A stretch of DNA of 64,000 nucleotides from Scyliorhinus canicula (taxonomy: Eukaryota), in NCBI RefSeq assembly GCF_902713615.1, contig NC_052147.1, positions 21,626,276 to 21,690,275 on the forward strand, read 5' to 3'. The position numbers and the translations under genes were made by a program. Each line of letters starts with the position of its first letter. Positions within the stretch are counted from its first letter, which is position 1. Below, piece by piece: positions 24,291-24,490 of the stretch. The notes below the pieces were generated by a model. It was not told the DNA's origin and searched no databases. It saw only the letters and a program-made list of their open reading frames with translations.

Positions 24291-24490
24291 GATGGTAGCC
24301 ATGATGTGGAGATGCCAGCGTTGGACTGGGGTGAACACAGTAAGAAGTCTTACAACACCAGGTTAAAGTCCAACAGGTTTGATTCAAACACGAGCTTTCG
24401 GAGCGCAGCTCCTTCCTCAGGTGTTCCTCAAGCTCGTGTTTGAATCAAACCTGTTGGACTTTAACCTGGTGTTGTAAGACTTCTTACTGT
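24291..24490. mobile_element. Short Penelope-like terminal-repeat element with a 61-bp perfect inverted repeat
   Basis: Arms 24337-24397 and 24430-24490 are exact reverse complements; same family as 44121-44317; contains a hammerhead core. Confidence 0.8.
24389..24423 (-). ncRNA. Minimal type-I hammerhead ribozyme motif
   Basis: Minus strand CAC-CUGAGGA-A-GGAGC-UGC-GCUCC-GAAA-GCUC-GUG: CUGANGA and GAAA core, 5-bp stem II, CAC/GUG stem I, palindromic AGCU in place of stem III, CUC cleavage triplet. Confidence 0.75.

Follow-up and report, generated by a model that had tools for sequence, protein, structure and literature searches.

A hammerhead motif at the apex of a probable Penelope-like fold-back insertion in the genome of Scyliorhinus canicula

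Introduction

When a complete ribozyme motif is found inside a long perfect hairpin, is the arrangement a device, or does it only reflect how the DNA was inserted? This question is raised by a locus of about 200 bp in the genome of Scyliorhinus canicula (assembly GCF_902713615.1, contig NC_052147.1), at positions 24291-24490 of the 64,000-nucleotide stretch that we analyzed (contig positions 21,626,276 to 21,690,275), hereafter called the window and numbered from its first letter. An original prediction, made from the letters of the DNA, had described the locus as a minimal hammerhead ribozyme caged in a hairpin within a small mobile unit. Our analyses indicate that 24291-24490 is very probably one insertion event of an abundant Penelope-like element (PLE) family and carries a hammerhead typical of PLE terminal repeats. 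The proposed mobile unit with its caged ribozyme is a by-product of the insertion architecture known for these elements.

Results and Discussion

Hammerhead motif on the minus strand

The minus-strand hammerhead string proposed at 24423-24389 was reproduced letter for letter, and the complete Penelope-type minimal hammerhead that had been claimed is there, with its core, helix II, short helix I and AGCU. The parts of the motif are the following, all on the minus strand:

24386-24426: minimal type-I hammerhead, including a 6-bp helix I
24426-24421 with 24391-24386: helix I, GAACAC with GUGUUU, 5-6 bp (one G-U pair counted)
24420-24414: core C3 U4 G5 A6 G7 G8 A9
24413: extra unpaired A, between A9 and 10.1
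24412-24400: helix II, GGAGC/GCUCC, 5 bp, with loop UGC
24399-24396: G12 A13 A14 A15.1
24395-24392: G15.2 C16.2 U16.1 C17 (U16.1 at 24393, C17 at 24392)
24391-24389: GUG after C17
24392/24391: predicted scissile bond between C17 and G, by standard hammerhead numbering

The closing pair of helix II, G10.1-C11.1, is formed by G 24412 and C 24400. Helix III is replaced by the self-complementary AGCU (A15.1 G15.2 C16.2 U16.1; 24396-24393), which has no loop. The motif at 24386-24426 has the core by which PLE minimal hammerheads are recognized (CUGANGA ... GAAA, with U16.1 and H17). Apart from what the core itself dictates, these ribozymes are described as having a short helix I, a palindromic 15.2-16.2, the G10.1-C11.1 pair and one base left unpaired after A9 and before 10.1 (PMC4209133), and the shark motif resembles them in its type-I topology, full core, extra base after A9, G10.1-C11.1, palindromic 15.2-16.2 and short helix I. 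It differs from them in helix II, which has 5 bp here as opposed to 7-8 bp in the Schistosoma families.

A hammerhead search had been proposed along with the prediction, and its outcome depended on the tool. Our own descriptor asked for the core, an optional bulge, G10.1-C11.1, GAAA, a 15.2-16.2 pair, U16.1 and H17, and let helix II range over 4-8 bp while helix I had to reach 3 bp or more; it returned a single match on both strands of the window and none in 200 dinucleotide-preserving shuffles. The Rfam hammerhead models gave no match at their gathering threshold, nor at E<=10 on 24200-24600, a miss that is expected because these models include helix III, absent from the motif. Three other Rfam models (MIR841, MIR859 and mir-1269) matched 24340-24486 with E values of 1e-5 to 1e-14, far under the gathering score. 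These sub-threshold matches to plant and animal miRNA precursors merely reflect the long hairpin and are a trap for automated miRNA annotation.

Anatomy of the fold-back

The 61-bp inverted repeat stood as claimed, with arms at 24337-24397 and 24430-24490 that are perfectly complementary, and with two mismatches it reaches 24402 and 24425 (66 bp, 97%). The extent given for the unit (24291-24490) had to be revised, since the family sequence begins at about 24301 and the letters before it are private filler. We call this insertion copy 1; with its surroundings, it is organized as follows:

23614-24290: left portion of a TG-rich micro/minisatellite array with imperfect repeats (Tandem Repeats Finder; T+G 0.74-0.82)
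24291-24300: 10-nt filler GATGGTAGCC between array and element, with no counterpart in the second copy (below)
24301-24336, minus strand: 36-nt tail, a 3' extension of the sense strand, on one side only
24337-24402, minus strand: tail-side arm, the longer 5'-truncated copy, whose sense continues into the hammerhead
24403-24424: apical loop, which on the minus strand holds the hammerhead core and helix II, and the joint of the two truncated copies
24425-24490, plus strand: second arm, the shorter 5'-truncated copy, with neither catalytic core nor tail
24488-24852: right part of the TG-rich array (Tandem Repeats Finder)

The second arm begins within the 3' strand of helix II, and the mismatches at 24428/24429 replace G12 and A13. 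Copy 1 interrupts a TG-rich array of 1.2 kb, its target site, and no clear target duplication was seen around it. The imperfect TG-rich arrays of this region (23614-24852 and 25498-25851) consist of units such as TGTGTGTCTGTATCTG. They yield long spurious ORFs, for instance 23739-24443, which runs into the element.

Other family copies and window content

The window holds a second fold-back, copy 2, and a fragment of the same family:

44122-44319, minus strand: copy 2, an older fold-back in opposite orientation, 86% identical to copy 1
44111-44120, repeated at 44320-44329: 10-bp target-site duplication TGCTAATTTT of copy 2
44205-44171, minus strand: hammerhead of copy 2, with G12 changed to A
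44282-44319: 38-nt tail of copy 2, on one arm only
39469-39503, plus strand: decayed 35-nt piece from the arm/tail junction, lacking a partner for a hairpin

The two arms of copy 2 are 89% alike, and its G12-to-A change, at a CpG site, is ordinary post-insertion decay. With only two copies to compare, copy 2 is surrounded by AT-rich unique sequence and copy 1 by the TG-rich array. Directly to the right of copy 2, positions 44340-44400 appear to belong to a different interspersed repeat, which contains CAGTGCAGAAGAAGGCCATTCGGCCCATCGAGTCT.

Read outward from the hairpin centres, all four arms of the two copies align with a single sequence of ~125 nt, each of them truncated at the 5' end. Its sense order is the hammerhead, ~50 nt, and then 36-38 nt ending in CATCAT on one arm per copy; accordingly, the tail of copy 1 (24301-24336) aligns with that of copy 2 (44282-44319) and is missing from both other arms. 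In copy 1, it is the tail-bearing arm that is longer and contains the entire hammerhead. In copy 2, the tail-less arm is the longer one, and the tail-bearing arm begins in the 5' strand of helix II (44209). Since the two copies are truncated at different points and have the longer arm on different sides, the apex is not inherited, and each fold-back was assembled at insertion from a linear template.

No autonomous PLE with the 3' end of this family was seen in the window. We searched the ten longest ORFs of the window against Pfam and found no PLE reverse transcriptase or GIY-YIG domain, only the protease and integrase of an LTR element. The latter come from plus-strand ORFs at 2252-5136, which encode an aspartyl protease (PF13650/PF13975) and an integrase core (PF00665) and represent the remnant of an LTR retrotransposon pol. 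A 23-nt core of the arm was matched nowhere when metagenome and viral contig collections were scanned for the exact pattern.

Family abundance and a private junction in public reads

A total of 35 sequencing runs were found, all as Logan contigs except four raw RNA runs from 2026, of which three were oligo-dT libraries and one a single-cell PolyA library. We used a DNA run available as Logan contigs, two raw RNA runs from oligo-dT libraries and an RNA contig set, all from the same organism, and placed reads on 24281-24500 at no less than 80% likeness; the placed reads represent the family as a whole. In the 1.36-Gb DNA run, 15,330 contigs matched the copy 1 stretch at that level. This PLE family of the shark genome is thus extremely abundant.

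Family reads and contigs end sharply at 24299-24303, with unrelated letters beyond, which places the constant 3' end of the family at about 24301 and identifies GATGGTAGCC as private filler. On the other side, matches depart at 24423 and continue as a partly shared sequence (AATGA...), indicating that many copies reach further 5' than copy 1. Depth collapses over 24424-24432: at the junction of copy 1 (24424-24429), the summed depth is ~400, compared with ~1,000,000 on the arms, and the junction is therefore private to copy 1. Moreover, both arms of copy 1 have the same minority state (24382 A / 24445 T, where the family has T/A in 88-92%), which indicates that a single template served for both. 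In the RNA runs X33 and X34, 143 and 513 reads, respectively, had a common flank before the family 3' end (24299; agreement 0.57-0.83). This flank implies that a family copy is contained in a single, strongly expressed transcript from another place in the genome.

These data bear on the idea that the 200-bp hairpin moves by itself, as a non-autonomous element (of hairpin SINE, MITE-like or retrozyme type) that propagates by being copied whole from master hairpins. Both copies in the window are of similar size, ~190-200 bp, and a clean target duplication encloses the whole of copy 2, as such an element would have it. However, a junction depth three orders of magnitude under that of the arms is not what copying from masters would leave, and the junction of copy 2 is a different one. 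The two apexes would also need independent truncations, as the longer arm carries the tail in copy 1 and lacks it in copy 2. As for retrozymes, the animal non-LTR ones are short, non-coding and hammerhead-bearing, and are kin to PLE terminal repeats (Cervera and de la Peña, 2020); they have also been described in one chondrichthyan (Li, Clavereau and Pollet, 2026, preprint, 10.64898/2026.07.22.740005). The shark sequence is likewise short, non-coding, hammerhead-bearing and related to PLE terminal repeats, but retrozymes consist of direct tandem repeats and form circular RNA, whereas here there is an inverted pair with one hammerhead. No direct tandem array of the unit was found, and no go-back (circular) joint was present among the joints listed. 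We consider a self-propagating hairpin unlikely.

Another possibility is that the locus is a tRNA-derived or other Pol III SINE in plus orientation, tail first, with a hammerhead-like string occurring by chance on its antisense strand. In its favor, the arm contains the string GGTTAAAGTCC, which we take to be loosely B-box-like. Nevertheless, ARAGORN gave no tRNA-like structure, Rfam no match, and an A-rich or LINE-like tail is absent. The 0/200 result of the hammerhead descriptor in shuffles speaks against a chance string, and the constancy of the tail end together with the variability of the hammerhead end shows that the sense strand is the hammerhead strand. We rate the probability of this origin as close to nil.

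Among the DNA variants listed at 5% or more inside the motif, the changes were at N7 (24416, 14.5%), in loop II (24405, 65%, and 24407, 62%, two forms) and at H17 (24392, C to A, 10.7%). These are positions where hammerheads tolerate change, a pattern consistent with constraint on the core that is supportive, not conclusive.

Probable origin by Penelope-like insertion

The anatomy of both copies finds its counterpart in what is known of PLE insertions. These show strong 5' truncation, commonly an adjacent inverted 5'-truncated copy, a bias toward microsatellites (PMC8557442) and a 30-40-bp tail that is often at one end only (PMC8557442; Craig et al., 2021). The likeness lies in the inverted truncated copies, the one-sided tail of 36-38 nt, the microsatellite target of copy 1 and the outer ends that correspond to RNA 3' ends, which priming by both target strands would be expected to give; the difference is that the shark copies, at only 66-125 nt, leave a bare hairpin with no ORF. 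A further likeness to the PLE families with minimal hammerheads is the presence of thousands of dispersed copies, mostly truncated elements, and of close pairs on opposite strands. In those families, Cervera and de la Peña (2014) described dual close motifs on opposite strands (PMC4209133). The architecture and the literature together would link the family to a coding PLE.

A PLE protein from Anolis cleaves and extends both target strands in vitro (PMC11167929, 2024), and the same element has two adjacent internal start sites of reverse transcription, the stretch between them being the tail (PMC11167929). By analogy, both strands of the TG-rich target may have been nicked, each serving as primer while one and the same RNA was reverse-transcribed. 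One cDNA would have started at the distal site and so acquired the 36-nt tail, the other at the internal site, giving an arm with no tail. Both would have halted early, within helix II in one case and just upstream of the hammerhead in the other; once joined, they would form an inverted repeat, head to head, with the 3' ends of the element on its outside. We infer this double priming from in vitro and genomic descriptions of PLEs, which give a matching anatomy.

Hairpin versus ribozyme fold

The original prediction had also held that the long hairpin competes with the hammerhead, and predicted energies agree with it. For the minus-strand fold-back, the minimum free energy is -128.2 kcal/mol, compared with -108.3 kcal/mol when helices I and II are enforced, so that the hairpin is predicted to be preferred over the ribozyme fold by ~20 kcal/mol. 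For a solo arm, the corresponding values are -33.9 and -31.7 kcal/mol, a gap of 2.2. In a minus-strand transcript, the upstream arm would be made first and be at hand as soon as A14, A15.1, GCUC and the helix I 3' strand are transcribed. Its pairing with these would bury the cleavage site. As each transcript has a single sense hammerhead, there would be no intramolecular dimer to furnish helix III. For PLE minimal hammerheads, single motifs gave no detectable cleavage and dimers showed low activity (PMC4209133); dimer cleavage is also attributed to Lünse, Weinberg and Breaker (2017) in PMC6765202. In the two raw oligo-dT RNA runs, libraries of a kind that is poor for cleavage products, no pile of read ends (one fifth of the molecules or more) was present anywhere on the stretch, including 24392/24391. 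The Anolis study likewise saw no hammerhead-cleaved ends (PMC11167929). The hammerhead of copy 1 is most likely an intact-looking passenger, which the predicted folds suggest to be inactive.

RNA editing of the arms

Reads with A-to-I editing on the arms had been proposed as a check of the hairpin, and we found them as strand-specific A-to-G changes in RNA. Each raw RNA run had 23-24 A>G and 23-24 T>C places, as opposed to 4 and 1, respectively, in the DNA run. The A>G changes occurred solely on reads placed on the minus strand (24342, 24343, 24346, 24352, 24355, 24365, 24366 and 24386), at rates of 25-46% in RNA and 0.1-2.6% in DNA, rates that describe the family and come from oligo-dT libraries, with DNA and RNA from different individuals. 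The T>C changes occurred solely on reads placed on the plus strand (24364, 24396 and 24452-24475), at ~6-42% in RNA and <3% in DNA; at three sites for which the rate was computed, it was 23-42% in RNA. At the level of the read, all these changes are T>C, as A-to-I editing appears in a library whose reads represent the strand opposite to the RNA. Among the loose-end consensus sequences, one was itself a hyperedited arm.

None of the edited sites listed lies on the tail, where the depth equals or exceeds that of the arms. With edits on the arms and none listed on the tail, an intramolecular fold-back is indicated as the ADAR substrate. Position 24396, which is A15.1 on the sense RNA, was altered in 23-29% of RNA reads, and the 3' half of the hammerhead thus lies inside dsRNA in many transcripts of the family. 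About 80% of the placed RNA reads continue into unrelated sequence, as expected of copies inside longer host transcripts. Hairpins of this family are thus formed in vivo, and ADAR edits them. Heavy A-to-I editing of Penelope inverted repeats has been reported in a lizard (PMC5625713) and in Xenopus tropicalis (PMC10636886). The shark resembles these cases in the heavy editing of Penelope-derived inverted sequences; it differs in that the data concern a shark family, at the level of the family, and that editing extends into the hammerhead, at A15.1.

Does the combination of hairpin and ribozyme then amount to a two-state device that evolved within a small non-autonomous element and, by self-cleaving or making dsRNA, cuts or silences host transcripts that extend across it? 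At the top of the hairpin each fold precludes the other, the motif is intact and family transcripts do make dsRNA in vivo, all of which such a device would require. Yet the geometry that cages the motif is not inherited, given the private junction of copy 1 and the position of the core on the other arm in copy 2. The hairpin is predicted to be more stable by ~20 kcal/mol, and the motif has neither helix III nor a partner in the same transcript; for motifs of this kind, cleavage was undetectable in monomers and weak in dimers (PMC4209133). The lack of a read-end pile along the stretch in the two raw RNA runs and the editing of A15.1 itself point the same way. We regard the device as very unlikely; the switch that had been proposed found no support, and caging follows from the known architecture of inverted PLE copies. 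Under the reading of copy 1 as a PLE insertion, its RNA most likely behaves simply as a long hairpin edited by ADAR.

Implications for PLE fold-backs in the shark

Copy 1 offers, in a shark, a textbook case of PLE insertion (putative double priming, a one-sided tail and extreme 5' truncation) combined with a minimal hammerhead. For annotation, hairpins of ~200 bp with an apical ribozyme should be masked as PLE fragments, and not reported as new ribozyme devices or miRNA-like hairpins. One could go further and speculate that the long, perfectly paired dsRNA of shark transcripts derives in the main from genomic PLE fold-backs, and that editing of the stem might free the hammerhead for trans-dimers, but nothing in our data suggests this and we judge it exceedingly unlikely. 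If true, it would mean RNA cleavage that depends on editing, through I-U pairs that loosen the stem, and a dsRNA role comparable to that of inverted Alu pairs in primates. Contrary to editing-dependent cleavage, editing of A15.1 should harm the ribozyme. As a class, PLE fold-backs are abundant ADAR substrates, and this bears on studies of RNA editing and dsRNA sensing in cartilaginous fishes.
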